From Perkinsus chesapeaki ATCC PRA-425 (Eukaryota; Protista; Perkinsozoa): a stretch of 64,000 bases of DNA. A program made the position numbers and the translations under genes. Of this stretch, positions 9,596 to 36,960 are shown piece by piece (the stretch's first letter is position 1; each line of letters opens with the position of its first letter). The DNA is taken from NCBI GenBank assembly GCA_013115145.1, contig JAAPAO010000012.1, forward strand, positions 62,001-126,000, read 5' to 3'. The notes below the pieces were generated by a model. That model was not told where the DNA came from. It did not search any database and saw only the letters and a list, made by a program, of their open reading frames with translations.

Positions 9596-12500
9596 ATGTC
9601 AACGAATAGAGGCGGCAGCAGCAGTAGCACTGCTGCATCCTGGTGGCAGAGGAGCGTAGCCGCCTCCTCACCGAGAGCACCCTCCGGCAGGGTTTTGCGG
9701 ACACCATTGGGAAGCGGACGACGAATGCAGTCACAAGTCGGGTCGATACGGGACAGGCTTGACGTAGGGCATAGTTGACAGCATCTTGGTCCGGTATAAT
9801 AAAAATATCAGCCGAAGGAGCGTTTGAATATTTAACAGACTTGTGACATATCCTCGTTTTGGTAGGTCGACCGCTTAATGGAATGGCCAGGCTTCCTTCC
9901 TATTAGTTTTTATCTATTAGCCGCAGGCTGTACCGGATGAATCTTAGAATAGGGAGCAGCACGACATCTTTATATCCCAATTTTGCTAAAAACTCGGTGG
10001 CGTACAGTGGTTATGCTTGGTCAATTAGGTAAACCTGCGTGAAGCCATAACACGCCGGAACCCTCGACTTTCACAAGCGTGGAATTTATCGCCCGAACGC
10101 TCATCCACACCAACAGCGGACTCTCCTGTGGAAGAGCTGCCGGCTAAACGACGACGATCCTCGGAGGCCTCTTGCATTGATTTAATGGATGCAACTCAAG
10201 TGGAAATTCCTGAGAACGATGCCAGGGGTAGTTTTCGGGGTATTTATCAAAAGCTATTGCGTGCTTTGGCTGCCAATAACTGTAGCGGCTTCATAGCGTT
10301 TATGATATTTACTGTGATACTATGTGATCGAGTGGACGAGAAACAACTATACACGCAGGTACCGCTTCCCACAGTGTTACAGCATGATGCTGTAACACTG
10401 TCAGCATCTGCCGGCAGGCCTTGCTAAGGCAATGCTTGCACATTTGAGCCCGAACTTCACCTCACCGAAAGGCGATAGAAAATGCACTTTCCGACAATTA
10501 TTACACAGCGAAATATACAGTATGTCATGAATAAATGATAACATACTGTATAGTTTAGACTAAATTATAACTAAATTATTTAGTTACATAGATAGTATTA
10601 TAATATTACCGAAATTATACAGTAACGATATACTGTATAATACAATGTGATAATTCGGGTCTCCAGTGGGGACTCTCCGCTGGAGAGTACTGGGCTAGTA
10701 ATCGGGTGTCTGGGTTACCCATTCTTCAACCTATTATGGGGCGGCGCCATCGAGTTGAATCGACTATGCAGGTGAGGCTAGCTCGGTCCAGGAAGAGCCC
10801 AGCGGTATCGAGTGTGCCATTTGCCTCTGCCCGGCTGGGCCCGGCGCTACAGTTGGTACCTTGCACGCTAACGCATCGAATCCCGAGCCAAGCTGCTCTC
10901 ATCGGTTTTGCTTCGATTGCATCTACAAGTGGTCGAAGGCTACCAACTTGTGCCCGCTTTGCAAGGGACGATTTGGCTGCATACGAAAGCACAAAGTCGT
11001 TCAAGGGGATGTCATGCGGTAAGCACGTCACGCGCCACGAAATTGTGACCTAAGTTCAGTCCTATAGAAGGCCCCTTCGGTCTGGTGCGGATACGTAAGA
11101 AAGACATGCGGCCCGAGGACTTTGTGACGCCTCCGGGCGAGGACGCGGAGATCGTTCAACGATATAATGACTTGGTTTGCGAGGTGAGAAGGTATCACTG
11201 TTGGAAATTCCAACTTGGAATATATGTAGTTGCTCGTCCCGGACGAGTCGTCCTCGACATAGACGAGTGCATTCTCATACGTAGACTCTACGTATGTTGG
11301 TGAGGAAGGCTAATTTCGGGAAAATGTAACAAAACTCTTTTAGATGTGTTCATATTGGGATTCCCAGCATTGGGGTCTCCAATGCTGGGCAGCCCAGTTT
11401 GGGCTGAATGAAATTAAGGGCTCAACTGATGACGGCTGACAGTTATTCCGGAAAAGTCTCAGTGGAACTGTGAGAAGGCATCACTTTTGGAGCACTCGAG
11501 AAAATTGCCCACCAATAGACAGGAAATACTGAATTGTTGGGAAGTGAAAAAATGGGCCGTAATTTCGCAATAAACCCAACAACAAATCATGAGTATTAAT
11601 GCCAATATCGGCAAAATAATCATCAGAAGATGTCTGTCAAGAGATCCATCGTTTCAGGCCCTGACCCGCGGTCCCTGCAGCGCAGGACAATTCAATCATT
11701 GACATTGGGCATCAGATATAGAATCCGAATGATTGAGCTAGATAAAGCTAGCTGTCTAGTCAGACTAGTCGAATAATGGACTTTACATGGAGAAATTAAC
11801 ATCTTCTCGGTCTACAGGATTTTCTCTTCAAGTACGACCCTCCGCGTGGGAAAAGTACCAGGCGAATGACCTAATTCAACGAACGAAATAGCTTTCTCGG
11901 CAGCATTACGGCTGAAAACAACCGATTCGGCGTCTCTGGCGAGATAATACGCCACACCGAAGATTCTGAGCATCATAGGTGACGCTGTTAACTCCTTGAA
12001 GATGCTGTTGACCAAAAGCTGTGACCGTGTGAGCGAAAAACTCGATGGACGAGATGGGCTGCTGTTGAAAATCATAAGAGGCGCCTCCTCCTCGTCCGAA
12101 TCGAAAGGGAGTCTCCCTGACGATCTGCGATGCTTCCAGACGACCTCCACCATCCTTTTTCCTGATCAGAGCCACAACCGAAGTAGGGTCACTCACGTTG
12201 TAGAGATAACTTGTCTTAACTGAAAACCGTTTATGATCTTCGAGAGCGACTATCGGATAGTCTTGCGGCGTGGGTCACGCCTGGTGCAATAATCATCGCT
12301 AATGCACGATGCACTAGCATGGTTAAGCAGTAACCAGGTACCCGTCCTGCGCATTCTGCAGGTTGTGGAGCGACCATCGTGATCAGACTCCCCGCAAACG
12401 GCTGAAATGAGTTCACGTAGCCTACGTGACGTAGGTCGTCCCGAAAACGGTCATATGCCAGACCGAATACGCTGCCCTGGGCCAGCTTCTGACCCTTTTG

Positions 12501-14649
12501 GGCTGATTTGAGCAATCGATGGTAAGGATTCAGTCCCGGCCTCGCGGTACCATCGGTAAGACCTATAGTATTATTATCTATCCATTTCCTTCTGCATTCC
12601 GCCCACTGCTCCACTAAAGCTAGTTGTTCCGTCACTGCTCGATGCTCTTGTATGCCCTGGTGTTGTCTTCATCGCTGTCTTGCCCGGCGCCTGTGCCTAG
12701 CAGCCTCCGACCGTCTCGACTTCGGCCTCCCATTTCTCTGTTTGGTAACCGAAGATGCCAGATGAAATGAAAACAGTCGGTTAACCGTGGTTTCCTTAAG
12801 CGCCCACGAGAATTTTTCAGTCCCGTATACATCTATTGGAGTCTCCATTGGTGCAGTCAGTGTTCCAACAAAGGTCCGTGCACTCCACTCTTTGTTTCCG
12901 GACGGAGGCAGCACAGCGGCAGCAATCCCCGGTTGTCAGCTATGCCCACTCGGCTTGACTGTTACCGTAACAATGTCACGGCTTACAGCAGCCGATCGCA
13001 CGCTGAGTGAGAGGCCCAAGCTGCGGTCATAACGTCATAATTGGAGCTTCTACGATCCCTTTCGTAGAATACGGGATCTTAGTGAGCATTGGCAATACAG
13101 AACTTTCGCACGTCAGCCGAAACCCGTCAAGCTGAAACACATTCTTACTGAATGTGTGAACTTTACTGTGGAGTTCGACGTCCCTTAATTTCAGTAATTG
13201 GACAACCTCACAGATCCAGTAACTGACTCATAACCCAATCCCTCCACCTTCTCGTAAAAAGTAAGCCTAGTGACGAATCCCTTCGCATCAATGATTTCGA
13301 CAGAGAATAATCTACCAGCGTTGCCGCGGTAGAAGGCAACAGGGCTTTCCGATATAACCTCGCACTGTAACCTGAGCCTATGCAGCAACATAATGTCGGT
13401 TATGTGCATCACAATGTGATTCATTACATGTTTTTTGCATAGAATTATTATGCATTTTAGAATCACCCGGCGAATATTTGAATGAATGCCGGGAAATTTC
13501 TCAGTCTGAGAAATGTGCTTCTCTGAGAATCTCAGAGAAGCACATTTCGCGAAAACCATGGACATCGTTGCCATCTGATACTGACCCGTCATTGCTGGGT
13601 GCAAATCCGGTCACAGTTGTCGACTATGCAGTGACCTACTTGGTGTTATGCTCATTGTAGGGAACAAAGCGCAACACTTGTCTTCGAGAACGACGATTCG
13701 CAGGTGTCTGACCCATGGTACTGGGTGTGCTAAGCTCAGCTTCGCCAATTGTTGAAGTGGTGCCATTTTAGGCGCACTAGGAAGCATTTTCTCTTTCAAG
13801 TCACAAGCTCAGTGGATTTCTCCCCACCGTTCGGCATAAAAATCTTGAGCATCTTGCACTCGTTTACATTTCCCCACTGCCTGAACCCTCAGTTTGGCAT
13901 ATGCTTTTCAATTAATCATGCCCTTCGATATGTGATCGGCGTCATGAGCACTGCTCGCGTCTTTTTTCAGGCGTGCCATGAGGGTACCTCGGAGAACGCC
14001 TTGCTCATTTGCGAGATGTGCGACAGAGGCTACCACACATTCTGTCTCCGTCCAAGACTTACAGCAGTTCCGTTGGACGACTGGTGAGGCCATTGGAATG
14101 GAAGTTTCGACTCGTTCTTGGAACAGGTTCTGCCCGGAGTGCCAGCAAGCTATTTGCGAGTCTCGAGCGATGTCCCCGCCAGTGCGTAGATCTCTGCGGC
14201 TGCAACGAAGAACTTCGATAAGCAGCGGGGCTTCATCTCCGATCGATTGCGACTCCGCATCCTCATCAGCGACTGAGGAGCAGTCTCCGGCTGAGGTGCC
14301 TCGGCGACGCTCTACAGAGGAGCGGCAACCAGCGCCGACTAGACGGCTGCGACGTGCCTGTCGGAGAGATTCCTTTGCCAGCGAGGTCTCTTGCGGCGAA
14401 TCGTTCATTGACCAAATGGCCAGAGAGCACCAGCGGCGCTCTGGCAGGATATCGAGCATCCGGCATAGTGACGTGGAGCGGAATTTCGAGGCCGGGAGGA
14501 GGGATGAAGCCTCAAGTAGCGGAAGTGATGGAGATGTGCTTGCCAACAGCGAGGGGTGGACTGAGAGCCTGCTAAGAATTCGAACGCTGCATAAAAGAAG
14601 AAGCCATGGGTCGAGCTTGGATTCCAGACTGCGGCCGAGGGGCTATTAG
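9596..14649 (+). CDS. RING-finger + PHD-finger protein (PHRF1-like architecture); 5' end uncertain
   Basis: RING at ~10810-10990 (CAICLC..CSHRFCFDCIYKWSKATNLCPLCK). The PHD is split by introns: ..LVCE | ACHEGTSENALLICEMCDRGYHTFCLRPRLTAVPLDDW | FCPEC, which needs an intron of ~2.8 kb (~11184-13970). An R/S-rich tail runs to the stop at 14649. Confidence 0.78.
10514..10698 (+). mobile_element. Foldback-rich element with a Helitron-like 3' end (GC hairpin, then CTAG followed by T)
   Basis: Hairpin tctccagtgg-ggactct-ccgctggaga at ~10660-10686, followed 8 nt later by CTAG (10695-10698) and T. It is preceded by AT-rich inverted repeats (10514-10552, 10568-10586, 10615-10640). No 5' TC end or Rep/Hel ORF was identified. 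Confidence 0.35.
11812..12914 (-). pseudogene. Degenerate coding-like remnant nested antisense in the long PHD intron
   Basis: ORF-track pieces 12669-12914, 12231-12635 (134 aa) and 11812-12153 (113 aa) do not join into one open frame. No family was recognised. Confidence 0.3.
13493..13548. repeat. Chained perfect palindromes (9-1-9 overlapping 19-1-19)
   Basis: atttctcag-t-ctgagaaat (13496-13514) and gaaatgtgcttctctgaga-a-tctcagagaagcacatttc (13510-13548). Confidence 0.95.
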
Positions 14650-14919
14650 ATAACGCTGTAGAATTTACATTAGACTAACACAGTGTTGGTTCTTGCACAG
14701 TAAAGCCATGTAATGCATCGGAGCTAATTGCTATGTTGTGCGAGTTGGAAGGTCAATTTACATTGGGGTAGTCGGCAGTGGAGAGTGGTGATTTCATGGC
14801 ACTTCCATGGTCTCGAGTAAGCTAGCGAATTTTAGAGCACAATCGGGAAAGGCTAATAAATACGATCGCTGGGAATCGAACTTGCGGTCGTCAGGGTAGA
14901 TTCATTTTAAGGCAGTACA

Positions 14920-17900: not shown

Positions 17901-20107
17901 TTGAAGAAAATGGTAGGAATACTAGTAACCAGTAAAGACTTCTTGTGCGTCATTCTTCAAGACTGACACATAGTAACACCTTTCTCAACACATTCGTCAT
18001 GCGTAGTGCATCACAACGACATGCTGCCGCTCGGCAGTGCCGAGTCGGCACAGCGAGGAATGCCAACCGGCAATAGTTAATAACCAGTCCATCTCAGAAG
18101 AGCGTTTCTCTTTCAGAGTTTATAGGGATTCTCGCCTCGAATATCTCGCGCAGGTCCTCAATGGCCGTCAGCTCGCATTGAAGGTGTCTGCCAACTCGGT
18201 CTACGGTTTCACTGGTGCCACAGTCGGTATGATGCCCTGCCTTGAGATAAGTAGCAGCGTTACTGCTTTTGGCCGCCAAATGATTGAACACACCAAAACA
18301 CTGGTGGAACAGAAGCAAGTCGATTTCTGTCTCCCCCTATCGGCGACACTTCTCCTAAGGTACCGTGTGGAGAACGGCTACGCCCATGATGCTACGGTCA
18401 TCTATGGTGATACCGATTCTGTTTTTGTTAAGTTCGGTTGTGATACTGTGGAGGAGGCAATGAAGCTTGGACAGGAAGCTGCGGCATACGTTTCGACCAC
18501 ATTCATTGATCCCATTAAACTGGAATTCGAGAAGGTGGCTCGAGATTGGCATACTGAAAATGAGACTGTAGTTCTCTTTTGCGGCAGGTATACTTCCCGT
18601 ACTTATTGATGAATAAGAAACGCTACGCTGGACTGTACTGGACGAACCCTGTGAAGGCCGATAAGCTGGATGCTAAAGGTGGGCCACGCCTTCCGTTTTT
18701 ACTAGCGGTCAATATATGCTTGATTCCACCGGTCTACAATTTTGTACGGAAGCACGAGGAGTTAAAGTGCTATTTTCGGCAGGTATTGAGACAGTACGGA
18801 GAGATAACTGTGAGCTCGTCAAAGTGGTGGTAGAGAACACTCTGAATATCATTCTTAAGGAGAACTCCCTTGACAGAGCCATTGCGTAAGACTGCGCTAT
18901 TTTCATAATATCGAAGGGTCACTATACTCCGCGGAGCGAGGGACAATTCAATAGTAATGCTGCAGCATCACAATTGGTCATTTTCGTCAGTGCTTACCTT
19001 AGAATACTATCATTTATTATAGGCCAACATTTACCTAATCCTAAAAGCTATCTATGTACCCATTCTCCCTTTCACTGTGTTCTCTTTTCCAGGTTCATTC
19101 GTAACACTCTCTCTGAGTTGCTGCAGAATAAAGTGGACATGTCCATGTTGGTTATCTCCAAATCCTTAGCGAAGGGGATGGATGATGTACCTCGAGCTGC
19201 CCCACTTGGCTGGATTCTCGTCTCTCTGTAGGGGGCATACGCTGCAAAGCAAGCCCACGTTGAACTAGCAAAGCGAATGGCTCAGCGTGATCCCGGTAAT
19301 GCCCCGGCCATTGGTGATCGAATACAGTAAGCCGCAGGGTCCCTGATGCCATCTGGGAGGTGCCCGCCAGGTACGTCATCATCAAAGCGCCAAAGGGAGT
19401 GGCTCAGTATGAGAAAGCCGAGGATCCTCTCTATGTGCGTGGCAGAACGAAGAGCGGTAGAACGTGTGCTTTCATCAGGCTGTTGAAAATAATATTCCCG
19501 TGGACGGTCAGCACTACATCGATCACCAATTGAAGCAACCTTTAATGAGAATCTTTGAGAACATCTTACCGAATGCAGAGTCCGTACTCTTTTCTGGAGA
19601 GCATATGCGAAAAGTACGCAAATCAGCCAGGGGATCTCTGCAGTACGTTTGCAGGTGTTCCAATCGGCGCCATCGGCTACTGGTGGCCTGTCCATGTTTC
19701 TCAAGAAAACGCATAAATGTCTGTCGTGTAAGGCAGTATTGAAGGACGGCCATGGCGGCGCGCTCTGTCAGCATTGCAAGAATGTAAAGGAAGGACAGGT
19801 GAGTTTGTTCGAGTTTGTCTTCCTTTTCGTGAAACGCTCGGACGGCTCCAGGTGGTTGTCGAGAAGACGAACGAGTTGCGCGCGCTGGAGGTTCAATTCG
19901 CGCGGTTATGGAGCGAATGCCAGAGGTGTCAAGGAAGCGTCGAACAGGATGTCATCTGCACATCCCGAGACTGTCCAGTATTCTATCGGCGAGCTAAAGT
20001 AACATAATGATGCCATCGGCATGAAGCATATGCTACTGCAGGTGCGGAAAGACGCCGCCAGGGCCGCAGATGCTGTGAGCCGGCTAAGAGAGGCTGTTGA
20101 CTGGTAG
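14920..20107 (+). CDS. POLD1: DNA polymerase delta catalytic subunit
   Basis: Starts [11 protein letters not shown].. and contains [22 protein letters not shown], Exo I/II/III ([24 protein letters not shown]), Pol motifs [22 protein letters not shown] and YGDTDS, and C-terminal CysA/CysB clusters (CLSC..CQHC; CQRC..CTSRDC). TAG at 20105-20107. Many introns. Confidence 0.97.
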
Positions 20108-20564
20108 AGGACGAGGCTTGGCGAATTTCCACCTAATTTCGTGCACTGCAAATGGAATAGTTTTGTTATCAATTCAATTCAGCCATAAGAGAGTTAGAGT
20201 TCAAGTAGCGACGGACTAAAATGTCATCCAAAAGGGAAGCTCAGGAGTGTCGAAAAGCTCACACCAGGCTACGCACCGGAGCCTTTCAGTCGCTGTAGTT
20301 CTTGGCGAGTGCATCACTACCGAGCCAGTCCCAGTGAGTTACACGCTGCAGCGGACCTTTATAACTCGTAAACCGAGCCATGACGTCCTGATTCGGCAGT
20401 CAAGATTGTTGACTCAAGAATTACACAGGCTCCCAGTAACATCGCATCTAACTATGGCTCTATGTTCATTTTATCACATGAGGTTGCACAACTTGTTCTG
20501 GCCTTGGCTAGACTACTCGTATACCGTTAGCTCCTAGAGATTCCCGAAGACGGAGCTTCATCGC

Positions 20565-21212
20565 CTATCCTTCCTCGAGATTCGATGCGAGCAGAGAAAG
20601 AGCAACATCATACAAAGTGCTCGCTAGCGAAGCTGAGGCACAACCTTCAGGCTGAACACTTCTGGGTGAACTATGCAGTAACACAGGAGGATGAGCAAAC
20701 AAGCGCACTATGTGCCGCAATAGCCAGGTAAATATCAATCTTCCCGGTTGCACGGCCAGCAGAGGTGTCATAGAGCAAGCGCCGCGTTGCTCGGATGTCT
20801 TTCGCTCGGGCCACTGCCCGGCGCTCGACCTCTGGCGATTTATCCCTATTAACGCAAAACTACATATACCTATGATCGAAAAGCTTATGCGGAAAAGGCT
20901 ATCCACTTGGCAACTTCATGACAACGAAGGCCGTTATGCAGCGAGCGAGATCATAAGGCTCAACAAAAGCCAAGATTGAGGTATTCTCAGCTGTTCGCGA
21001 CGCTCTACACGAACGTCGCTACAGAACGAACGTGCTGGTGAACCTCGCAATCTTGTTGTATTAGCAAGGGTTTGTGAACAGATCTCTTCCTTCGCAGCAA
21101 ACGATATGACCAAGCACATCATGGTCACAGTGATTGCGACTTTGACCATGGTATCTAATACACGTGCCATAATTCCGCCCGAAGGAGACACAATCCTTGG
21201 TGCAGCAATCAT
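20565..21212 (-). CDS. Possible small hypothetical protein
   Basis: Two adjacent minus-strand ORFs (92 aa with a hydrophobic stretch, and 113 aa). No recognised domain. Confidence 0.2.
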
Positions 21213-22241: not shown

Positions 22242-24689
22242 TTGAAAAACATGCCAGACCTTAGCAAAGATGACAACACAGCTATCCAGGACGTCTTGGG
22301 ATCGGAAACCATCAGCTACTATGACTTGCTTGATCGTAGCTCTGGGTCACATCCAGAGAAGAGCGAGTGCAAGACAATCATTGGATTACTGCGCTCCAAG
22401 GCTCCGGAAAAGGTCGTCAGGTAGGAATATGCCGCTGACGCTATGGTCACTAACTTTGTCATATTCGTTAGGTTCCGAGGATTCCAGTGTTATCGATAAA
22501 GATGGAGCTAAATGCACCGTTGCAGGAACTCCTAAGCCCTACGAGCGTGCCACGCTCAGCGTGGTCCATTTTTGGTATTTGCAAAATTGAAAGCACACCA
22601 GCACTGAATATTTAGGAGACCGGTACGACTGACGATATCGCAAGCGCGGACGTTCACAAACAGCAGCCGTGACACCGAGCACCGTTGCGCCTCCGTATTA
22701 AACAAGAAACCTGAGAAGAATCTACACCATATGTTAATCGCCGTCTCTGCTGCGGTAGGCGGGCGGCTGGTCCAAAAGTTTTGGACCAAAACCAAGTTCG
22801 ACGCCAAGCGCCGACTCTTAGCAGTGGCTGAGTCGAGGGGGGCTCGCTTAGTTCCTTTTGAGCTGAATATCTTAGCGGCCCTACTTTCTACGAAGTGGCC
22901 ACCAGGGGGACTAATTCGATACTCAAGCACAACATTCTCACTGGGCCTTATGGCCCGCGCCTGAGATCGGAGGATCTCTCGGACGCAAGGAAGATAGCTT
23001 CTAGACTTTCAAAAAACCATGAGCGTTGGTTCTTGGCGAACGGAAAAACTTGTTCAGCGATCGACGCCGACAGAGAGGTAAGGTGCGGTGCTTGACGTAA
23101 CATAGCTTGACTTGCCTTAGGCTGAATGTGGAGAAACATCTCCAGCGATTGACGCAGACAGAGAGGTAAAAAAAGAAACGTTCACTTCCCGACTCAACAT
23201 AGCTCGATCTGCTCTAGGCTGAATGTGGGGAAACATCTACAGCGATTGCGAATGGAGTTGTACGACCCCACCGTGAAGGTGAACCGGAAGCTCCTACATC
23301 CTACCCTAGCGTAAGCTCTCTCTCAAAAGTAGTCCATCTTCCCGTGATTCAAAACATCTTTACAATGAAGAATGCCGAACAGCGCTCCGTCGAGAACGAC
23401 CGTATCTCGCTGAACCTTCCGAAACTCCCTGCTCAACTGGCATTCCGAGTAACTCCGGCAAGCCCGCATCGAGTAGTCCTAGTACTGCATGCTGGCGGAT
23501 CTGTAACTAACCACTTCGGTTCGTCACGGGGAACATGGTGGCCCAACTCGAGTCGGTGCATGTCGGTAAAAGCGACAATAGGGCCTGGTGAAAGTGCTCA
23601 AATTCATGGGAAGATCTCTGTGGCGCTGTTATTCTCGATCTACAGTAGCAAGACTGACGGCTGCGAGGGCTACTCAACCTCTTGCCGATGAAGAACACCA
23701 GGGACCATTCACCGATGAGAAGGTTCTGCCGTTTCACATCGCCTCACTGTCTCTAAATACTCGATCCAGACAGGTTGTAATGAGTCTAACACCAGAAACG
23801 TTGGAGGCCGATATGCTTCAAGGTAGCAACCAGAACAAGAGGTTCATGGCTGAGCAATCTTATCTTAGATGGTTGCTCTGCTATGATGTTCTTACTGGTG
23901 AGCCGGTAATAATGTTATGCAATTAGCATTGGCAAGTAAAACTGTGATCTTTTCAGGTGGCGGTTATCACCTACACTTAGCAGGCGAGTCACCAACTTCT
24001 AAAGCTTACTGGTTATCTCTAGGCTGGCGCAACAGCCGCTGTGGACGAACCAGCAACAGTTGGCCGTTTAGGCAGCGGCTCAAAGTTGCTGTCTTCTCCC
24101 GACAGATTGGTCCCAATTGGGACCGACGATGTCTAACAACGGTAACAGAGGTACCGTACTACGCAGAATTGAACGCTCTACTCATTATCGAGCAAATTCC
24201 GCGTACCCACTGTTGTTTTAGTGACGGCAACTGTCGCGGTGGACTGCCGCTTTGGCCCCTTGTGCGATGTACAAGGTTTGACCAACAAGCGCTTTGGCTG
24301 CGTCCCAACCGATGCGACCAAAAGTAGATGGCCGCTTCAGTTTGTCTTCAAGACACCAACTCTGAACCATTCCATAACTTTGCATCGGTTGACGGCTTTC
24401 ATCGTTGAGTGGCATGTATGTATTATATACAGTTGGCCTTATATACTATATAAGGCCGCGTGTCAGAGCCATTGCAGACTACATCAATGGCAATGAAGGA
24501 TGCTTGGCTACTGTTTGGGTCAAGCCCGGGAGGGCTGTCGCGATAGCGGACGAGCCGGGTGCCATCACAGAGTCAGAACTACATGTTTACTCTTCGCGGC
24601 CTTTCCATTCCAATCCTGATTTCCTTAATAAAGTCGTGGCTATGGGGTGGGAAATTTGCTTTCTTTGCGTAGCATATTCTTGTGTGTAG
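22242..24689 (+). CDS. Lineage-specific hypothetical multi-exon protein (possibly decayed)
   Basis: A series of + strand open frames separated by GT..AG introns, including a tandemly repeated 45-nt exon (AECGETSPAIDADRE). No recognised domain, and the exon chain is not fully resolved. Confidence 0.45.
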
Positions 24690-26049
24690 ATTGAAACGTG
24701 AAGTTAGAGACCCTAGCCTACTCAATATCAGACTCTGATAATCAGAGCCATCCAAGGACCTCAGAGGCATAATATCAACCAACCGAGTACGTGAAACGGC
24801 CGCTCATCGAATGTATTATTATTTTTTAGATGCCACAGCACAGCAAGCTGTTAACCAAGGGAATCAGGCCGCTTTTCCAGCACAACCAGTAGTATATCGT
24901 TATCGTTGAATACGTTCATACGTTCAATAGCTTGACTTGAAACTGCGCTCGTATTACTCTCGTCGCTATTGCCTCTTTTTAGGTCAATATCGCACCATTT
25001 GAGATCGAGACGAGACCGACAATCTCGAACTCCCGAGTCTCGATGCCGCTCTCTGTAGAAGCCACTTCAGCAAGCAACGTTAAATTTTCACTAAGAATAG
25101 CTGAGCTGGTTGAGTTTCGGGGCTCGAGAGTCTTGAGTCATGACCTGTACTACAGGTCCTGTAGGTCATGAGCTCGAACCCGGCAGTGAGATCACTCATT
25201 GAGAGGATTTTGTATGCATCCCTGGCACCGTGCCAGTGGCACGCAAACTATATCCGTTTGTGTCACACAAATTGTGTGCCAGGGATAACTGGGATAACTC
25301 TTCTCGTCGGTCTAACTGACGAAAAGCGTTTCGCAGAGCACGCGGAACTTCACTACGGAGGCGTGTACCGGCCAGCTCATAAGATACAGTAGTTATGGTG
25401 CAAAATTTGCACTGCACATTCCCCGGTATTCGTGTCCATGGACTCACTGTCCGTGGCATGGTGAGGAAATTATAATTTCATGGATGTAGTACAAATTTCA
25501 CTCTAAATTTTAGTAAATTACAGTTTTAAACTGTAATTTGAAATACTGTTTGTTATTCTCAATGTCCAAGTAGCTACTTTTGTTAGTTTTGTGTCCGAAT
25601 TATTTTACTAGTTGGTGTCCTTATGCCGCATAAGCACACGCATAAGATATACGCTATTGGACCGCGGCGGTCCTATAGCTCCCTTGAGGGTCAAGCTCTG
25701 CTTTAACTTATTTCTAACTTGAGTTACAACCGTGCGTCTCGGAGTCGCCCGAAGTCGGAATGGGGGGTGAAGCGGAGTCGCTCACTACTAGTCCCATAAC
25801 CGGTTATCAAACCTTACAGCTTTCGATCGACACCAACAAATCTTAAATATCCATAATCATGTAAACTATGACGACTCGTCATTGACGAGCACAGTATTTA
25901 CCATTGACCGACACAAGAGAAGTCGAGGTCAGCCAAGTTTGGTATTGACAGCATTGATGAGTGTTATCGAAACATCGGTCTTGGAGCCTCCTAAGCTACA
26001 GGCTAATGAAACTATAGCTCGGGATTCTCGAGCCGGGAGATTAAGTGAT

Positions 26050-26097
26050 ACTAGGTTACCTAGTCTTAACTTCTACCTAGTCTAGGTAGAAGTTAAG
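26050..26097. repeat. Abutting perfect palindromes (7-1-7 + 16-1-16)
   Basis: actaggt-t-acctagt (26050-26064) immediately followed by cttaacttctacctag-t-ctaggtagaagttaag (26065-26097). Confidence 0.95.
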
Positions 26098-26222
26098 TTT
26101 TCAACCCTGAGTCAAACGAGAACACGGTACCTAAGAATAGGTCTGTTCTTCAGCTGAGAATAAGAATTGAAGTGGGAATAATATTGTATTATAAGCTAGG
26201 GCTGAGGACCATCAAACTATCA

Positions 26223-27939
26223 TCATGCACGGCACTGAGCTCCGGGGTGAGCTCTTGAGAGGTTCGGCCTTGTGGGTGGCATTACGAACATGTTACACGG
26301 GCCTAGAGGAGATGGTCACCAGATAGTACCATAAGAGCGAGTAGGTTTACCATCAGGCCTTTCATCTTGTTTCTTGACAATCCTCATATATCCTCCTTCA
26401 CCCCACTCTTCTCCCCTCGAGTTCTTGAGAATCCAATAGCTACCATTAATAACCAATCACGTGAATTTTATCGCATCTCGCACTCACTCTTTTCCCACAT
26501 TTGTGTCCGTTCCAAACCCGACTAATAACATAGCATGGTCTGGCTTGCCATTGCACTCCTGGCCTGCAAACGGATGTGATAGACATCCGTGACACGGGTA
26601 ACACCGTGTTACCAACACGGATTCCGTGTAACCCCGCGTGGTAGCACGGGAGTACTCCGGGGTTGCCAATACGGCTTGTTTATCAGAATATATCTCCTTA
26701 CTATCAAACACTCCTCCTTTGTACTGTTGGAATTCGTGGGAGTTCGCAGAGATGCCCACAGCCACTGGGCCTAGGCGAAGGTGTGTAGCTACGAGTTGGG
26801 AATCTCGAGGTGGGATTATCCGAATATCGAAGCTTCTCAGGTCTCCAACCTACGAAAAGCTCTGTACGACCAAACAGCATACCTCTTGCCTGTAAACATT
26901 GATCTCCCTTGTTCGAGACGATGGCGTTGTTGCATGTCCCATTTTGTTCGGTGTAGAGGTAGCTGCTTGCTGAGACGATCCCTTTGTCACTCACATATCT
27001 CATTGCGTACACGGGCTTGCCATCAATACAGCCGCTGAGATGCAAATATAACTATATATGTATAAGTTGTACAGAGACTCAATCATTGAGACTCTCAATC
27101 AGAAGCGAAATGGTCTCATATCATCTTGTCACATGGTGGGGCTCACCGGTTTCCAAAATCGCCTGAGCAGTCTACAATTTGCTGCACTGAAAATTCGACA
27201 AGGCTTTTGGTTTTGATCTGGAAAGCTGATTCAAGCGCACCTGACAACTGTTGTCAGACAACATAAGTTCATCCATTCGAGTACCGCCCTCCTCAACATA
27301 CCTACTGCCGCGAACGCATAGCAGCTACCGCAGTCGCCTTGATCCTTGGGTGGAGTTACGGCGCCATTATTTACCCAATTGATTGCTTCGCCTGCAAATG
27401 TGTGACCCCCGGCCCGGCTACTTATTGTCGGAGATTTCTGCGAGAGGCGGGTTGCCGAAGGCTCATTGCCTGAAACAATTATGCGTGGATACAAAGTATT
27501 TATTTCCAGCCGTACCTGGATCACCTAAACAGCTACGTATTTTGGCCATCTCTTGTGACTCAAGGAATGTCACCCTATTTGCTTCCATCTTGAATGAAGC
27601 TAAAACCGACCAGCTTTCCAATTATTGGAATCCAATACGCCGTTTATTCTATGATCGCATACAATTGCCAGCATTGTGCTTTTCAATGAGCTTGTAGTTC
27701 TCGGTGAAGATTTTGAATCGATAATCGTTCTCCTTATAACCGTATCTTAGACCATACCTGATATTAATGCGGCACAAGTATTTATTAGAAAAGCGTGGCA
27801 TCGTGATGAGGTAGCTTCACCAACGCGCCTACTTTTTCTTAAGGCGACCATAAACATCTCCTATTTCCTTCAGAGAGGCTCCAGTTGACAGGGTAATCAG
27901 CAACACCAAATGGAAGAAGATAGCTTGACAGCGTAGCAT
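26223..27939 (-). CDS. Papain-family (C1A, cathepsin L-like) cysteine protease precursor
   Basis: Signal peptide MLRCQAIFFHLVLLITLSTGA; I29 prodomain (YKENDYRFKIFTENYKLIEKHN); KDQGDCGSCYAF (catalytic Gln/Cys); PDHAMLLVGFG (His); YWILKNSRGEEWGEGGYMRI (Asn). Confidence 0.9.
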
Positions 27940-28390
27940 GATTCACTAGAGAACAATGCCAGCACTTATACATTCTATATCACTTAAATGCCAAAACAGG
28001 ATGGCCGGCTCGGCCCCCACGAGAGCTCTAAGGTGTACCGCTAAGAGTTCAGGAAAGATGGTCTTCAACTCGCAGCATCTGGCGCGACATGACATCCATC
28101 AATGATAGACCATCATGTCACGAAATATATTATTTGTCATGTCACGTGTAACTCAAACGGTGTGAACCACAACGCATTACCGCTTTTTCCTCGTAGCACC
28201 AGTACCGGGCGAGTAGGTTCTTATTCTAAACTCGAGCAATGCTCGGCCTTAGAGCCGGATACTTAGATAACTTGCCAGCCTAAGGCGGGTGTAATGGCCC
28301 AAAGCAGAGCTTGTAAGATATGATTTAGAGTTGCTGTTCAGAGTTGCTGCAGTCCGCGGTGCTTGTAGCGGCTACAACGTGAGCTACAAT

Positions 28391-28526
28391 GTAGCTCAGT
28401 ATGAGAAAGTCAAGGATTCTCTCTATGTGCGTAGAAGAGTAAAGGTCGGTAGAACGCGTGCTTCCATCAGGCCGTTGAAAATAATATTCCCGTGGACGGC
28501 CAGCACTACATCGATCACCAATTGAA
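28391..28526 (+). pseudogene. Duplicated 136-bp exon-intron-exon fragment of POLD1
   Basis: Collinear with 19399-19534, including the 44-nt intron. Hand alignment gives 15 differences in 136 nt (~89% identity). Confidence 0.93.
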
Positions 28527-28655
28527 ACGCTTTTCCCTATTGGGAGCAGCAGTCCCTCGGAAGAACTCCGCGCTATGTAGAATGCGGGGTCGTTCCTATT
28601 TAGATAAGCAACTTGTCACAATCCATTCGCCTGAGCTAAGGGCGGGTATGCTGAG

Positions 28656-28681
28656 GCTCAGCTGCTCATGAGCAGCTGAGC
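28656..28681. repeat. 26-bp perfect palindrome
   Basis: gctcagctgctca|tgagcagctgagc. Confidence 0.95.
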
Positions 28682-29901
28682 TGACAGCACTTCGATCTGG
28701 TCAGCGGCGGCCGCTGAGAGAGGGCCGTCACAGAGCGACGCAGTCGATGAAACGGTGAATCGACTCGGGTTTCTCGGTGAAGTCTGCTGCTGCTGATGAA
28801 ACACAACGCGCTCCAGCGATTGTGGTGTTCCCCGCGTCTCCTGCGTCGATTAGTATCTGTAACAAAGATACCACGGCCAGCAAGGACCCGATTAACGAGA
28901 ATTGTAGCGAAATTGTTGTTCTTCTCAGAACCAGCTCGCTGCAGTCTGATTTTCTCGCACTTGAACTTCCGCGGTGTTGCGAGTGGACCACTTCATTCTG
29001 CGGGACGATTTCAATTCAGGCTTCCTACGCAGTCGATCGAGGAGACCTGTCCCACACAGACTAGTGATTAGTTACTAATCTGGCCCTATGGTGTGCAGAT
29101 GTCCGACCACGTCGATCACTTCTTCAATGAAGAATCCTCATCACCTAATTATGAGGGGTAGATGTGATATAGAGCCAAATTGACTCAGCCAATGTAAATT
29201 AAGAGGACGCGGAAATGTTATTGTATAGCATCTCGGCTTAAACCCTCTGCAACTACGTGATTATTAGTTTGAGTAACGATATGTATCCCCCAGCATTGTA
29301 TGGTGGCTTATGGCTACCGATAAGTTATATGTTGTCATAACACGACGCATTTCAGTCGTGAAAGATTTGCCAGCGTTGATGGACCTCCAGCGACGAGTTA
29401 TAAACATACCCTTCTAAGCAATTCGTAAGCTGACAACTGGAGGGTTCGACTTTACGTCATCAGTACTCACGTCGTTATGTTTTCTGTATTTGATGAGCCA
29501 GGCTTGGTTGTTCACGATTAATGACTAGTGCGGTGACGCTAATCCACAGTACGACTAAGCGCACTCAGTGACAAACTAAAAACTGGGGTACCGAATGTTA
29601 ATAGAGAGTATATTCCTGTTGAGGCCCGTGCCGATAAAATGAAAACGTTCGATCATCAACAACATCTTATCAGTCTGACTTCCATCAGTTGAAAGCGCAA
29701 TCGGGGAGCTTGCGACTCTTCCGCTCTCATAGTTCGGGTGATGTCGCAAGGATGGACTTGGAGCCAGTATCTGTGGAGGTGCAAACTCCAGTGGAAGTAT
29801 TCCACTTATGCCATTGGGAACTCGAGCATTCATATGGGACTGCAAGCTTCTCCTATGTGGTTGCAGTGGAGAATTCCCGTAAGAAACCAATAAGCAATTC
29901 A

Positions 29902-31959
29902 CTAGTGGAGAGGTTGCTCTCCGAAATGGCATCGTGAGTTTAATAGTACAGACTTAAGCCTACACTGGTCTTTCCTTCTTATAGACATAGCACTGTTGAC
30001 AAAACGCTTGATCAAATCCATAGCCGCATCAGGCTGATTCATGGGAACCATATGGCCAGCATTTCTACATGCAAAGTAACATGCGAGTGAGGCTATACGT
30101 AGAAGTCTGGTTACCGAACAGAGTAATGACTCAATGGGCCAAAGTGGCATTCGTATCCATAGACAGCTTCCTCTGGACTGGTTGGCTGAGAATATACAAA
30201 CCGTGGGGCATCGATATGAGACGACAGACAAGAAGGCTGAGCTGTGTTTTGCATGACTCTTCTAGCCCGAAAGTGTTATGACTCGGTGTTTGACCAACAA
30301 TAGAGGATAGAACCACGCGCTAAACTTACGTCGGGTCCCCTCCATATATTCCGCTTGCTGGCAAGGAAACCGGCCATGCCATCCCACACCATTTCCGGAA
30401 TCCAGGCGTTTGTCCTGGAATTCAAGCGATGTGACTTATGATGTGAGAAACGCTCACGCTAGCAAGCCGTCCCTCGCATCTTTGTCTCCTTGGTAAAGCA
30501 TGACCGGCACTTTAGCGTTGAGCAGAGGGGGTAAGCAGTGCATCATGGGCTTCATTATGTCTTCAAGCAAATGCTTGTGAACGGCATCATCAGTTCTGAT
30601 AAACGTACCATCTGAAGCCTAGCGCGAAGTAAGAGCTACCCGAAATGTCTGTCCGCAGGGACATGGAAGGTTTCTTTAACCTCAGGGAGATTTAAAAAAT
30701 GCTGTAGCCTCTCGTCGAGAAAACTGTAAGTACCAGTGACTCTGAGGAGGACAGCTAGTAATACAGTATTCCCTAGCAGCGCCAGGGATCACCGAACGTC
30801 GTAGATGTTAACTCCACCGCTCTCTTCCAGCATCATTTTCTCAAGGCTCTCGCGAAGCGTCAAGGCTTCCAACCATCTGAGGAAGCGAATGGCCATTGCA
30901 GATGACTCACAAAAATAACTTTTCTTCTAGGGCAAGCTTCTTCGCCTTCTGTCCCAGTTCACGGGCTTCATCAATCTTATCGGGGCCGATAAGGCCGAAA
31001 TAGTACGCAACATCGGCTTTGGCGGCAACTTGGAAAGCTAAAACAATACAGAGGTCGTTTGTCACCCGATATCGCGATGGGATATCGTTCAGTATTCCAC
31101 ACCGAGGACCATGTGAAATGGACTGACCTGGAAAGGTGAGTCCATTTCCTATGGCAACTCCACTGAGGGGTGTCTTATCGATAGGGTTCTCTATTAGGTA
31201 CTTCCCTAAGGCCGGGATATAGTGGCCTGCGTATGATTCACCAACGATGAACCTATTGGAAGATAATCGGAAGAAAGTGCCAATGGGCGGCTTACAATGG
31301 ATGCTCTTTTAGCTCAGGTTTGACTTCCCTATAGAATGTCGTTAGGAACGTATACAACTGCTCTGTCACATCATGTTCGGTACTATTGGCATAACCTTCC
31401 GGATAGTCAGTGTAACTGTAACCAGTCCCCACTGGGCTATCAACAAACACCATGTGGTAAGAATTAGCCCAGGTTACATTTCTACGAACCTATGTTGATC
31501 AAACGAACGATGCTGTTGGCAAGATCACAGACTTACGAGGGTTGTGTTGTTGATCAAGTTGAGAGGGCCCATCTCAAAGAAATTGCCGAAGAACCCAGGG
31601 GCACCGGGCCCGCCTTGGAGCCACAGAATCAAGGGTGTATTTTTGTCGTCTTTAAGCAAATCATCAAGCGGGGGAAAGTACCTTGTTAAAAAATACGACC
31701 AGTACTTCTACCTACAATGTTAATGATTGGCACTACCAATAGAACATGGAAGAATTGAAATTGGTATCAACTGCTACCATTCCAGCATCACTTTGTATTT
31801 CTGTAACCTTAAAAGGTTGAGGTGGTCGAATAGCGCGTTCACAAGAGGCGCCATTCTTACCCGAGTATCTTTTGATATTTTATTCAGGTCTACCGGTAGG
31901 CTAAAGACGCCAAGAGTATAAAGGATAGCCAGCCACGTAGTGCAGAGCCTTGCTGGCAT
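29902..31959 (-). CDS. Serine carboxypeptidase, family S10, copy 1 (3' end approximate)
   Basis: Signal peptide MPARLCTTWLAILYTLGVFS; PLILWLQGGPG; ESYAGHYIPA (catalytic Ser); GDKDARDG; AGHMVPMNQPDAAMDLIKRF (His). Confidence 0.9.
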
Positions 31960-33371
31960 TGCAAGTCTTCTACACTGACAAAGGCGCTCCCACCATTGTG
32001 GATCATTGTCTGCGGTGCTCAATGTCAGTGCAAGGTGTTTTCTTATGCACGTTCCGATTGTAGAAAAGTAGATGAGGGTTCGCCGTGCTCGTGGGGCAAA
32101 TGTTAACAGAGCCTATGCCTCCTGGTATGCACGTGCTAGGTCGACGGGGCCCTCATCCCCTGCCACTGAATCCAAGTAAGCTTGTCACTGTAGGATGGTC
32201 TATACGGCTAATCGATTTTATAACTCCACCAAACTCAAGTTGAAGATACAACACATATAAGAAGAGAGCGCAGTTACGACGCTAGTAGCGGCCTCCTCTC
32301 TGGCAATCCTCGGGATTAAGCCATGCAACTGTTGCGGTATATTGTAGTGCAACATGTGGAATCCCGCCATGCAAGGTGGTAGACGCAGTGCGTCTGACGC
32401 ACGCATGCGCAGAGACTAAGACGGCGCGGACTCTGCACCTAGGAGGAAGGCTCCCAAGAGCCGCAAGCTATGCACGGTTCCATGGGTTCGGCAAAACTCG
32501 CGACTTATGGGCAGAGGCAACCATTCCATTGGACTTACGTCTGCCTCTTTGAAACGAATTAGTGCTTGAAGCAAATGGAATGGAGCAGCGCACAGAGCAA
32601 CACAAGATCTGTCTTACATGTCGATATGATCAAGTCTGCCCGTATGTCAGCAAGCGAACCGCATACATCCGCAGTTCCTCAGTTGGATGCTTAGTCCAGT
32701 GTTCTATTATGCCACCCTCGCGGACACTGTATTGGCTTACACGGTATGACTGTTACAATCGCGTGATACTTTTGCGAGCTTGCAAAAACTTGTCCCAGGG
32801 ATCCGTGACGCGCAGCACGATTATAATGAGTGACGAATGCAGGTCATATACAGACTCAGCTCAAAATGTGAACCAAACGAATCTGTGAGTCGAAGAGAGC
32901 AACCGACAATGAGTCTCCGCTGATGGGCATTGAATCCTGTCCCGAATTATCTCAAGCGCCGAGAGGCGTCAATGTGGATGGTAAATGTTACAAAAGCCAA
33001 ACGGATGAGCGGCGCTGATTGAGACTTGACGGTTGGGCTTCCGATGGATTCGGTGGGGTCACTACCAAACCAACGAGTAGTAGTAGAAGCAAATTTGCCT
33101 TAGCAACTTCTGCCTGAACTCCTTGCTCAACCAACACAACGAAAACTCACGGAGCGAAAAGTGAACTACAAAATAGATTGTCCTCCCGGATTACAAGCGC
33201 AGACATCTGGAGTAGATATCCGACAGGAGATCAACCTCGTGGCCGACTCGCCACTGGCCACAAAGGCCATAACATGAGAACTGATAGCAGCAGGTAGGCA
33301 ACGGATACTTAGTAGGCTTCGTCTATCTTCAGGGGGAGCCCCGCTGGAGATAATTAGGTAGAGAATGTCTA

Positions 33372-33584
33372 CTAGACACCCAAGACATCAAAGCAAGGGT
33401 CTCTGCGCAAATCTTTACCCTCACAGCAGGAGAAGAATTGATCAGGCAAGCAGCGATTCCCAAGCCCGGTGACTTCACCACAAACTCCGGGTCCGGTCAT
33501 GCCCAGCCAACAGTCATTGAAACAGCAATCGTCTACTGCCCATGAAACAATGAAGAGAATGTTGCAGAGTGCCAGACGTAGTAT
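33372..33584 (-). CDS. Putative small secreted Cys-rich protein whose frame begins at ATA (non-AUG start or pseudogene)
   Basis: Open frame ILRLALCNILFIVSWA-VDDCCFNDCWLGMTGPGVCGEVTGLGNRCLPDQFFSCCEGKDLRRDPCFDVLGV*, directly preceded by an in-frame TAA. Confidence 0.4.
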   Translation of the reverse strand: MLRLALCNILFIVSWAVDDCCFNDCWLGMTGPGVCGEVTGLGNRCLPDQFFSCCEGKDLRRDPCFDVLGV

Positions 33585-34727
33585 TTAGTGCGCGGGAGCT
33601 GATGAGTGAAAGGTCTACAAAAATACGAATGATGCCAGAGAGGCACTCTATAAAGGTGCACTATAACTCGATGCAGTGTGACACAATAAGACAAGGCTTA
33701 ATTGTGAGTACGCTTAGTGCCCTGAGAGTCGATCAGCCCTGCGCGATGAGTCGATCACGCAATCGATAGCTGATTGTAGGTATTTGATACGCAAGTGCAA
33801 GCACTAACGCACAGAGGTCGGCAACAGTAATAGACAAGACCATACAGTAGGAATAGCGCACAGCCTGTGCGGCACAGGTTGCGCGTCGAACAAGTAGGAA
33901 GACGCTTCTCCTCCTCACGAGCAGTGAAGCGGCACTTTCTGAAATGAATCTGTGCGATCTTTTGAGACGTGACGCCCCTGTTGCCACGTATCGCGGGATA
34001 CGCGTACGTGTTCGGTGTTCCCTCTCGGCTCTATCCTTTCGAAAGCGGGGAGGAGTGGACTCAAGTCCTCCTTTAGCAGGCCTCCGTCGCCAAACCTCCG
34101 GAAAGGATCCCATGAGAACCAGAAGCACGCATGACAAATATGAGGTTTGGTCGGTGTTTTAAGTAGCATGCTTATTCGAAGCCTCTTTGACAGGTATCAG
34201 ATAATACAAGTAAACTACGCATCTCTTCGAGTACTTTGTAGATCTTGCCTTCCTCAACTGATGTTTTCTACCGATGTAACACTGCCAATCCTTGAAAATG
34301 GCTTAGCGAAAAAACAGTTTCCCATATAACAGCGACTGGCGAATTTCGTACCACCAGGGTGTGAGTGTAACATCAGTCCACCTCCGGCAGCAAGATTTAC
34401 TGGGAGCTGTTCGCACTATTAACTACTATGGCAGCCTTTGGAGGACGGAATCAGTTTCGTGAGTCTTACTGAACTCCACCGAACTTTCCGAGCACTTTGA
34501 AATGAATGACTAAAACACCACAAAGATAAGAAGAAACTAACGTGTGGTGAGGGCACGAGTCCATAAAATAAAAATTGTTTTATAGCCATAACATTTAATA
34601 TAACGAAACCTCGGCCAGTCGAAGCCCACCACTTGGTCGGAGAGTATCACTCAATCTCTGGTGACGCAGCGAGAAAAGACTTAGATTTAGTATCTGAAGG
34701 AAACGGTGTCCACCATAGAGAGTTAGG

Positions 34728-36960
34728 CTACACTAGCCAAACAAGAAGCCCGTGTCCAATGCCACTAGACACGGGCTTCTTGACCATGAAACTGAGATAA
34801 ATCATGTTCCTTGAGGATGATGTACGGTACGCGAAGTTGTACAAGGTGAGGACGGTATGCTTACCGTTTATTGAGATAGCATTTATAATGAAACGTTTGA
34901 TCAAATCCATAGCCGCATCAGGCTGATCCATGGGAACCATATGGCCGGCATTTCTACATGCAAAATAACATGCGAGTGAGGCTATAGAAGTGTGGTTACC
35001 GAACAGAGTAATGACTTAATGGGCCATAGTGGCGTTCGTATCCATAGACAGCTTCCTGTGGACTGGTAGGCTGAGGAAGAGATCACAATACGGCTATGCA
35101 GTGCATAGTATGCACTAAAGGCAAACAAACCAGATATCTAGCTATGAGCTGTATAACTCGATCGGCATTCTATAGCGCATCATAGTGGTCATTGTGTAGT
35201 GAATTGCCAGATGTTGGTACTACTGCCGGCAACAGCAACACCTGGCGAGCCCCCGCCTGTGAGTTCTGTAAAAACGACTATGCAACCGACTTACGTCTCG
35301 TCCTCTCCATATATTGCGTTCACTGGAAAGGTAGTCGGATATACCGTCCCATGGCAGCTCGGGGATCCACGCTTCAACTCTAAAATATGGTAGGCACTTA
35401 ATACGGGACGAACCGAGCTGAGCTGCGTTACGATATTAATCCGTCCTTCGCATCCTTGTCGCCCTCAAAGAGCATCACAGGCACTTCAGCGTTCAGCAAT
35501 GGCGGTAAGCAATGTACCATTGGCATCATTATATCCTCCAGCAAATGTGCCTCGACGGCCTCATCGGTTCTAAAAGACGAAAACCTTGAGATACGAAATA
35601 TGCAGTAAGCGCTACTTGAAGGACCGATCAACGGGAACATGCAGGGTGGCCTTAACCTCCGGAAGATTCAGGAAGTGCTCAAGCCTTTCGTCTTGCCAGC
35701 CATAATCGTCTGTGGTACTGAAGAGAGCGGCAGTTTCCGTCGCAGCTACTAAAGCGTGCCGCAGCTGACCGAATATCGTAAAGATTAATTCCACCACTCT
35801 CCTCCTGCATCAACTTCTCGAGGCTCTTACGTGCCTCCAGAGCTTCCAGCCATCTGGCAAAACAGGGTCAGCACTGGCTTACAGGAGGAACTCACCTTCC
35901 CTCTAGTGCGAGTTTCTTCCCTTTTTGTCCTAGTTCACGGGCTTCATCAATTCTATCGGGACCGATAAGGCCGAAATAGTACGCAACATCGGCTTTGGCG
36001 GCAACTTGGAAAGCTGAAAACAAAACAGAAATTCTGTATTCTGTAACAGAATTCAGCCTCGTCGTGAGAAGGAAGTAGCCGACGACAAAATGGCAGGGAA
36101 ATACGGCATTTAAGTGAAGTGAACTAACCTGGAAAGGTGAGCCCATCTCCTATAGCAACTCCACTGAGTGGTATCTTATCGATAGGGTTCTCTATTAGGT
36201 ACTTCCCCAAGGCCGGGATATAGTGGCCTGCGTATGATTCACCAACGATGAACCTATCGAAGGTAATCGGAAAAGGAATGCCAATGGGCGGCTTACAATG
36301 GATGCTCTTTTAGCTCAGGTTTGACTTCCCTATAGAATGTCGTTAGGAACGTATACAACTGCTCTGTGACATCATGTTCGGTATTATTGGCATAACCTTC
36401 CGGATAGTCAGTGTAACTGTAACCAGTCCCCACTGGGCTATCAACAAACACCATGTGGTAAGAATTAGCCCAGGTTACATTTCTACGAACCTATGTTGAT
36501 CAGCTCATGAACGATGCTATCGACATCAGAAGCTCACCAAAGTAGTTCGGTTAATCAAGTTGAGCGGGCCAAGCTCGAAGAAGTTGCCGATGAATCCTGA
36601 CGAACCAGGTCCTCCCTGGATCCACAGAATCAAGGGTGTGTTCACATCATTTTGAAGTGAATCGTCTAGAGGGGGGAAATACCTTGAAAAGGAATGGACG
36701 AATTAAACACTCGGAGGTTAATGCAAGTTCTACCAGTAGAACATAGAAGAGTTCAAGTTGGAATTGATGCTCACCATCCCGGCATCGCTTCGGATTTCTG
36801 TGACCTGAGGACTAAGGGTATTCCGATGGAAGAATATACGAGCCAGTCTCGGAATAGCTACCTTGGGGTCTGTCGAGATCTTAGAGAGGTCCACAGGTAA
36901 ACCGGAGACACTCCATAGATATATCAGCGCCACGAGAGTGGTAGGGAGAGCCGCGGGCAT
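34728..36960 (-). CDS. Serine carboxypeptidase, family S10, copy 2 (3' end approximate)
   Basis: Signal peptide MPAALPTTLVALIYLWSVSG; PLILWIQGGPGSSGFIGNFFELGP; ESYAGHYIPA; GDKDAKDG; AGHMVPMDQPDAAMDLIKRF. Paralogous to 29902-31959 at ~5.0 kb offset. Confidence 0.9.

Follow-up and report, generated by a model that had tools for sequence, protein, structure and literature searches.

Palindromic scars in non-coding DNA of Perkinsus chesapeaki as very probable footprints of hAT-type transposon excision

Background

Insertion of a hAT transposon duplicates 8 bp of target DNA, numbered here N1 to N8. To excise the element, the transposase makes a nick one base into the flank on either side and seals both flanks as hairpins; for the element Hermes, Zhou et al. 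2004 reportedly placed the first nick one base inside the flank, while the line of work on Ac/Ds is said to include the hairpin model of Coen et al. 1986 and the study of Lazarow et al. 2012. With the nick one base inside, the left flank reads N1-7, the complement of N8, then N7'..N1', i.e., a 7-base arm around a one-base centre, and the right flank is its mirror image. This report concerns 64,000 nt from the shellfish parasite Perkinsus chesapeaki ATCC PRA-425 (contig JAAPAO010000012.1, positions 62,001 to 126,000; “the window”), in which non-coding DNA carries many short perfect palindromes with a single central base. These palindromes are very probably the excision footprints of a hAT-type cut-and-paste transposon.

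Footprints of Ac/Ds in plants, Saccharomyces cerevisiae and Candida albicans resemble the Perkinsus palindromes in their 8-bp duplicate, their long arms and their frequent microhomology: they consist of inserted palindromes whose centre complements the transposon-adjoining base, are usually joined with microhomology, and have arms that reach 20 nt in S. cerevisiae (PMC5873905). Ac/Ds footprints in C. albicans are, however, heterogeneous, with 28 different footprints among 128 events, most of them containing 0–3 palindromic bases (Mielich et al. 2018, PMC5873905), whereas one full-length product of 22 nt, with the whole duplicate inverted, dominates in Perkinsus. The Perkinsus scars also differ in that they arose naturally, are fixed and lie densely, with roughly one in every kb of non-coding DNA, and that no donor element is in view. 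Hermes likewise forms hairpins on the flanks and makes an 8-bp duplicate. Its target sites show a preference for nTnnnnAn (PMC10368747, PMC2803484).

Two further systems offer partial parallels. In V(D)J recombination, the P nucleotides of coding joints arise from RAG-generated hairpins opened by Artemis (PMC2175297), which is likewise an off-centre opening of a hairpin on the retained DNA that leaves palindromic additions. Unlike the Perkinsus scars, V(D)J palindromes have no centre base because RAG nicks exactly at the border, and their hairpins are opened within a few bases of the tip, so that additions are 0–4 nt rather than the 8–20 nt seen here. Past excisions have also been read from genome sequence in rice (Roffler and Wicker 2015, PMC4423477). 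Recognising the rice events required a comparison of two genomes, whereas the Perkinsus scars identify themselves within a single genome; most of the rice events were deletions accompanied by filler DNA, and only nine hAT events were among them. In the literature searched, no paper was found that deals with hAT elements or footprints of Perkinsus, and none that describes stereotyped scars across a genome.

A single class of palindromes

Perfect inverted repeats were counted across the window at spacers of 0–10 nt, with nested cases removed and 20 first-order shuffles as the control. At a spacer of 1 nt and arms of at least 7 nt there were 56 non-nested sites, compared with a shuffle mean of 5.0 and a maximum of 10. 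Spacers of 0 and 2–10 nt gave 1–9 sites each versus ~3–5 in the shuffles, with none clearly enriched; enrichment is confined to the single-base spacer that the initial annotation of this DNA had singled out. Spacer-3 palindromes with arms of at least 7 nt are mildly in excess (9 non-nested sites vs 3.6), and may be scars with a mutated innermost pair. Nearly all of the 56 spacer-1 sites (54) fall at 10.3–36.1 kb. The distribution of spacer-1 arm lengths does not have the shape of a geometric decay: 26 sites have arms of 6 nt, 39 of 7 nt and 7 of 8 nt, with a thin tail to 19 nt, such that the mode is exactly 7. Arms of at least 9 nt occur at 10 sites, versus 0.3 in the shuffles. Seven of these had been listed in the initial annotation and all are present, centred (arm length in parentheses) on 10577 (9), 11286 (10), 13505 (9), 13529 (19), 25527 (12), 26081 (16) and 28389 (9). 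Three were new, centred on 10386 (15), 22778 (10) and 24446 (11).

Many of the palindromes overlap in chains of the type A-x-A'-y-A, and these have the form N1-7 + revcomp(N1-8) + N2-8, 22 nt in total. The same form can be read as x1 W x2 W' x1' W x2', with a W of 6 nt, centres 7 nt apart and arms of 7 nt. Every 22-mer in the window was scored against the 14 constraints of this canonical form, again with shuffles as the control. Fifteen 22-mers matched without mismatch (shuffle mean 0), 7 with one mismatch (0.05), 4 with two (0.25) and 17 with three (2.1). The 22 units with 0–1 mismatch all lie within 11.2–35.1 kb. Seven of the eight chains listed in the initial annotation (11201, 18030, 25142, 27241, 32381, 33857 and 35094) proved to be perfect 22-nt copies, while the eighth, at 27078, is a 23-nt variant.

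Coordinates of the scars are given without strand. The perfect units, each with its inferred target site, begin in the upstream part of the region at 11200..11221 (GTTGGAAT; 0 of 14 constraints mismatched), 12414..12435 (CACGTAGG) and 18030..18051 (CTCGGCAC), the last in the intron directly upstream of an exon of the DNA polymerase delta gene (POLD1). They continue at 22543..22564 (GAGCGTGG) and at 22771..22792 (TCCAAAAC), where the left palindrome has an arm of 10 nt, flanking TGG pairing with CCA. A run of perfect units follows at 24726..24747 (TATCAGAG), 25143..25164 (ACCTGTAG), 25222..25243 (CTGGCACG), 25257..25278 (TTTGTGTG) and 25868..25889 (ATGACGAG). The unit at 27242..27263 (TGACAACA) lies in the region of a papain-like protease gene, not in coding-like DNA, and is followed by those at 27616..27637 (TTCCAATA), 32381..32402 (AGACGCAC) and 33857..33878 (CGCACAGG). 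The unit at 35094..35115 (CTATGCAC) lies in an S10 carboxypeptidase paralogue, within an intron block that has diverged and is bordered by conserved exon blocks. Single-mismatch units are found at 11233..11254, 20399..20420, 25398..25419, 26598..26619, 28095..28116, 29120..29141 and 29172..29193. At 29059..29080 lies a decayed unit with three mismatches that contains an arm-7 palindrome centred on 29073.

All 22 units differ in sequence, each is made from its own local 8-mer, and they have no motif in common; what unites the family is a shape and not a sequence. Units that are short, inverted and dispersed could suggest a family of tiny mobile elements, similar to MITEs (transposable elements that are miniature and have inverted repeats) or fold-back elements, that insert as units. 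Copies of such a family would share sequence, chiefly at their termini, whereas no two units here do, and N1-7 and N2-8 are the local 8-mer, built from the unit's own flanks. This refutes a MITE or fold-back family as tried here, and insertion of ready-made units is extremely improbable.

Each chain is instead a single excision, in which both flank hairpins share one inverted 8-bp target-site duplicate. The initial annotation had proposed an undescribed, iterated process of hairpin opening and extension or of fold-back. No such process is needed, since each chain is one event for which ordinary hAT-type excision suffices, a mechanism of a known kind. In a reading without a transposon, close to the one that the annotation preferred, the palindromes arise by replication template switching or snap-back synthesis (Pol theta-type joining, quasi-palindrome mutation). 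Template switching is established as a source of perfect inverted repeats beside its template, and a few single palindromes without a partner copy would suit it. It does not explain, however, why the length is fixed at 8 bases, why the arm mode is exactly 7, why only one spacer class occurs or why there is the target-site preference described below, and scars joined out of register would need two independent switches each, anchored on the same 8 bp. Short template-switch or quasi-palindrome events would also vary in length and distance, and this variation was not found. An origin by such processes is very unlikely.

Target-site preference and the type of transposon

The form of each scar allows the 8-bp target site to be reconstructed, which was done for 26 scars. 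T at N2 or A at N7 was found at 27 of 52 positions, versus a background frequency of 26% (p=6e-5). This preference is not imposed by the way in which the scars were found, and no further position in or adjoining the 26 reconstructed sites stands out. The target consensus of Hermes and related hAT elements is nTnnnnAn (PMC2803484, PMC10368747), and the reconstructed sites match it. The 22 units and the 20 palindrome pairs described below, 16 of which are canonical units, are built on an 8-bp duplicate in the order flank copy, inverted material, flank copy, and their one-base centres agree with the complement of the transposon-adjoining base. Three features together argue for hAT-type excision: the fixed 7+8+7 geometry, centres complementary to the duplicate's outer bases, and the nTnnnnAn preference. 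They also bear out the suggestion in the initial annotation that hAT transposases, which form hairpins on the flanks, would leave palindromic footprints centred on one base.

Other transposons that make duplicates of 8 bp, or of 8–9 bp (Mutator-like, Zisupton, Novosib), or a host-domesticated nuclease that forms hairpins, could in principle leave similar footprints. The Mutator-like element Muta1 makes duplicates of 8–9 bp and also forms hairpins on the flanks (PMC5499845), and no hAT element was found in the window. However, a preference for T2/A7 is the signature of hAT (Ac-type) elements (PMC2803484), and Muta1 excision is >90% precise in yeast, with repair that its authors think differs from that of hAT elements (PMC5499845). 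Dada elements, which are known in Perkinsus, make duplicates of 6–7 bp (PMC3706591), and a P element leaves parts of its own termini at the site, unlike the scars here, which are without common sequence. A source outside the hAT superfamily is accordingly considered unlikely. Footprints of the P-element or Tc1/mariner type were tried separately and rejected: the units have no common motif, and an 8-bp geometry is not a TA duplicate.

Out-of-register scars and a model of excision and repair

Palindrome pairs were identified by requiring that the last six bases of the first palindrome's left arm equal the first six of the second's right arm. By this test, 20 pairs of spacer-1 palindromes have the N2-7 core in common, whereas shifting the register by 1–2 bases leaves 0–1 pairs. 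Canonical units account for 16 of the 20 pairs; the other four have centres 14–24 nt apart. Four sites with long arms (9–19 nt) obey the same 8-bp logic but are joined out of register. The first, at 10371..10408, is a single palindrome rather than one of the core-sharing pairs: an arm-15 palindrome centred on 10386 is followed directly by N2-8 (CAGCATC; site ACAGCATC), and its left hairpin would have been opened at least 15 nt from the tip. At 13496..13548, palindromes with arms of 9 and 19 nt, centred on 13505 and 13529, have the site TTCTCAGA in common and overlap by 5 nt (GAAAT) at the join. At 26050..26097, arms of 7 and 16 nt are centred on 26057 and 26081, with the common site ACTAGGTA and no overlap at the join. 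At 28363..28398, arms of 7 and 9 nt are centred on 28370 and 28389, the site is TTGTAGC(C/T), and the join contains a 2-nt filler, CG. In five of six cases in the three pairs, and also at 10386, the centre base complements the 8-mer's outer base. This agreement is not imposed by the palindrome search.

These scars suggest a route by which one product could dominate. Following excision by a presumed hAT-type transposase, the hairpins would be opened on the 5'-ending strand far from the tip, 8 to ~20 nt away. Opening at such a distance would leave long 3' tails, each starting with the inverted duplicate, N8'..N1' on the left and, on the other strand, N1..N8 on the right. The tails would be perfectly complementary over 8 bases and could anneal; trimming of the overhang and filling in of 7 nt per side would then place 22 nt where there had been 8, a gain of 14. 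The same 22-nt unit would result wherever the nicks fell, such that the uniformity of the unit would be explained by annealing of complementary tails independent of nick position. Tails joined elsewhere would preserve longer arms, giving the palindromes with arms of 9–19 nt. Measurable tails in the out-of-register scars are ~10 and 20, 8 and 17, 8 and 10, and 16 nt, which indicates that hairpin opening can be 8–20 nt from the tip. Direct joining after an opening near the tip, known for Artemis in V(D)J recombination (PMC2175297) and seen in C. albicans (PMC5873905), would give only 0–3 palindromic bases. The geometry, the rule for the centre base and the site preference are observed here; the transposase, the distal opening of the hairpins and repair by annealing at microhomology are deduced from them. 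Integration of transfected DNA in P. marinus is mostly non-homologous (bioRxiv 10.1101/2021.06.11.447996), which does not settle the repair pathway.

Independent contigs and related loci

Three runs from two studies (2020 and 2022) yielded independently built contigs that match positions 24300–29300 with 0 differences, 0 gaps and full depth. The samples for these runs may, however, have included the one from which this DNA came, and rare variants do not show in contigs. The match excludes a mistake of a single assembly, but it could still reflect a feature peculiar to one culture. These data bear on the proposal that the palindromes are chimeras of assembly, amplification or sequencing. Inverted chimeras are established as typical of multiple-displacement amplification, all of the runs may derive from the same culture, and contigs were compared rather than raw reads. 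On the other hand, contigs from all three runs carry the whole 5 kb without a difference, point mutations are present in several units, as expected of old sequence, and neither the avoidance of coding-like DNA nor the target-site preference is expected of an artefact. An artefactual origin is barely credible.

Several observations weigh against excision by a hAT-type transposon. Strict and relaxed searches of the window for inverted termini flanked by an 8-bp direct repeat found no element, only chance-level matches without common termini, and 40 open reading frames (ORFs) across the window contained no transposase domain, only host genes (Pfam). Neither an empty nor an occupied allele was seen, the run contigs showing a single haplotype. 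Hermes is known to have the one-base nick offset, and Ac/Ds footprints point to it indirectly; for Perkinsus it is read from the scars. About a dozen single palindromes, including those centred on 10577, 11286, 24446 and 25527, have no partner copy of the site, although they may be scars in which the other flank was resected. Finally, the sole related locus fetched is too diverged for a comparison of empty sites. This locus came from a search with an ORF encoding WD40 repeats, which found one relative (P0121, 79%) on contig L001; a protein search with the POLD1 exon returned no Perkinsus protein, its best match being 72% identical. Positions 1-12342 of L001, a Logan contig from run SRR12548988, are collinear with positions 1-9219 of the window, which hold CNOT1-like and WD40 genes, at 66–76% nucleotide identity. 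L001 is alignable in coding DNA only and ends short of the scar region; like the matching, gene-dense part of the window, it has no 22-nt scar and no excess of spacer-1 palindromes.

Paralogous sequence within the window gave no empty site either. Tandem S10 serine carboxypeptidase paralogues on the minus strand, at 29900–31500 and 34790–36500, have exon blocks that are ~90% identical and introns that cannot be aligned, such that the scar-bearing introns are not comparable. From the DNA polymerase delta gene, a piece of 136 nt (19399–19534), exon-like at its core, recurs as a copy 9 kb downstream at 28391–28526 with 89% identity. The scar at 28363..28398 adjoins the left edge of this copied fragment and provides an acceptor-like end (...GCTCAG). 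As the fragment ends at the scar, it offers no clean empty site. The copy may have been taken up as filler DNA when an excision break was repaired.

Genomic setting, amount and age

The window is eukaryotic DNA of 52% G+C. Its 10–36-kb region holds intron-rich genes, including those for a PHD protein, DNA polymerase delta, a papain-like protease and the two S10 carboxypeptidase paralogues (Pfam); a RING-finger-like exon was also read by eye from its cysteine pattern, with the one ORF tested there having no Pfam match. Rfam and tRNA scans of the window found no RNA genes, and a small RNA run gave nothing. A crude mask based on codon usage flags 12% of the 10–36-kb region as coding-like, compared with 44–46% of the window flanks. 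None of the 22 canonical units overlaps coding-like DNA, as would be expected of 14-nt insertions. One isolated palindrome (28701–28717) does overlap coding-like DNA. The flanks are richer in long ORFs and contain no canonical scar with 0–1 mismatch, even though the mask leaves roughly half of their DNA unflagged. Clustering by region is therefore seen as well, which could reflect local re-insertion or a preference for open chromatin. The spacer between convergent genes at ~24.7–26.2 kb contains six canonical scars.

The initial annotation also proposed that the process builds new intronic and intergenic sequence. Each canonical scar does add 14 nt, and the total is ~420 nt (22 x 14, plus 22–31 nt for each of four irregular scars), but this amounts to only ~1.6% of the 26 kb. 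Approximately 11 substitution events across 26 units of 22 nt suggest that the recognisable scars are ~2% diverged. The excess of units with three mismatches (17 vs 2.1) indicates that older scars also exist.

Implications

Within the literature searched, the dominance of one full-length product and a density of about one scar per kb of non-coding DNA seem to be undescribed. It is possible, and proposed here only tentatively, that hAT breaks in Perkinsus are almost always mended by one route, with hairpins opened 8–20 nt from the tip and annealing of the duplicate, and that each excision leaves a self-identifying, datable scar of +14 nt. If so, tens of thousands of transposition events, local hopping among them (six scars in 24–26 kb), could be counted in the genome as fossils, and the genome would also be a natural read-out of an end-joining pathway without tip-proximal hairpin opening. 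The window holds more than 26 scars and 0 resident elements, an imbalance that could point to a few very active, or host-kept, transposases.

Excision footprints are normally too variable to be found other than by genome comparison. The scars described here have one exact shape, and the 8-bp site can be read from each. Transposition rate and history, site preference, regional hot spots and the repair of hairpin breaks are thus measurable from sequence alone in a genetically difficult protist. For annotation, perfect short palindromes in the introns and spacers of this genome should be treated as scars, not as regulatory hairpins or new elements.

Single, irregular and compound palindromes

The single palindromes without a partner differ in length and setting. 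That at 10568..10586 has an arm of 9 nt and is AT-rich; a second copy of its site was not found, and it may be either a one-sided scar or a product of chance. The palindrome at 11276..11296 (arm 10, no partner copy) is probably a one-sided scar with the other flank resected. Partner copies are likewise missing for the palindromes at 24435..24457 (arm 11) and 25515..25539 (arm 12), and that at 12248..12262, with an arm of exactly 7, is without a copy of N2-8. Outside 10–36 kb, the sole spacer-1 palindrome of complex sequence with an arm of at least 7 nt is at 43006..43022 (arm 8, no partner copy), and it may be due to chance.

Two units do not match the plain model. The 23-nt variant chain at 27078..27099 reads CTCAAT C ATTGAGA C TCTCAAT, with centres 8 nt apart rather than 7. 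An irregular unit at 36031..36052 reads ATTCTGT ATTCTGT A ACAGAAT (direct, direct, inverted) and fits only in part. The single-mismatch unit at 26598..26619 lies inside a compound cluster at ~26585–26630, with further palindromes centred on 26605 and 26622: CCGTG A CACGG is followed by the unit and then by ACACGGA T TCCGTGT, an arrangement that looks like a second insertion and excision in or beside an older scar.

Part of the scar-rich spacer may also be repeated elsewhere. In the run contigs, short stretches at 25636–25820 and 25397–25416 reach a word depth 2–3 times that of the sequence around them, and the first 19 nt of the single-mismatch unit at 25398..25419 recur at another genomic locus. 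A 593-nt contig links 25397–25416 to 25784–25818 through 80 different letters, not the 367 found here. These observations suggest a small family of repeated sequences, one copy of which is interrupted at this locus, and the family might be the remnant of a mobile element.

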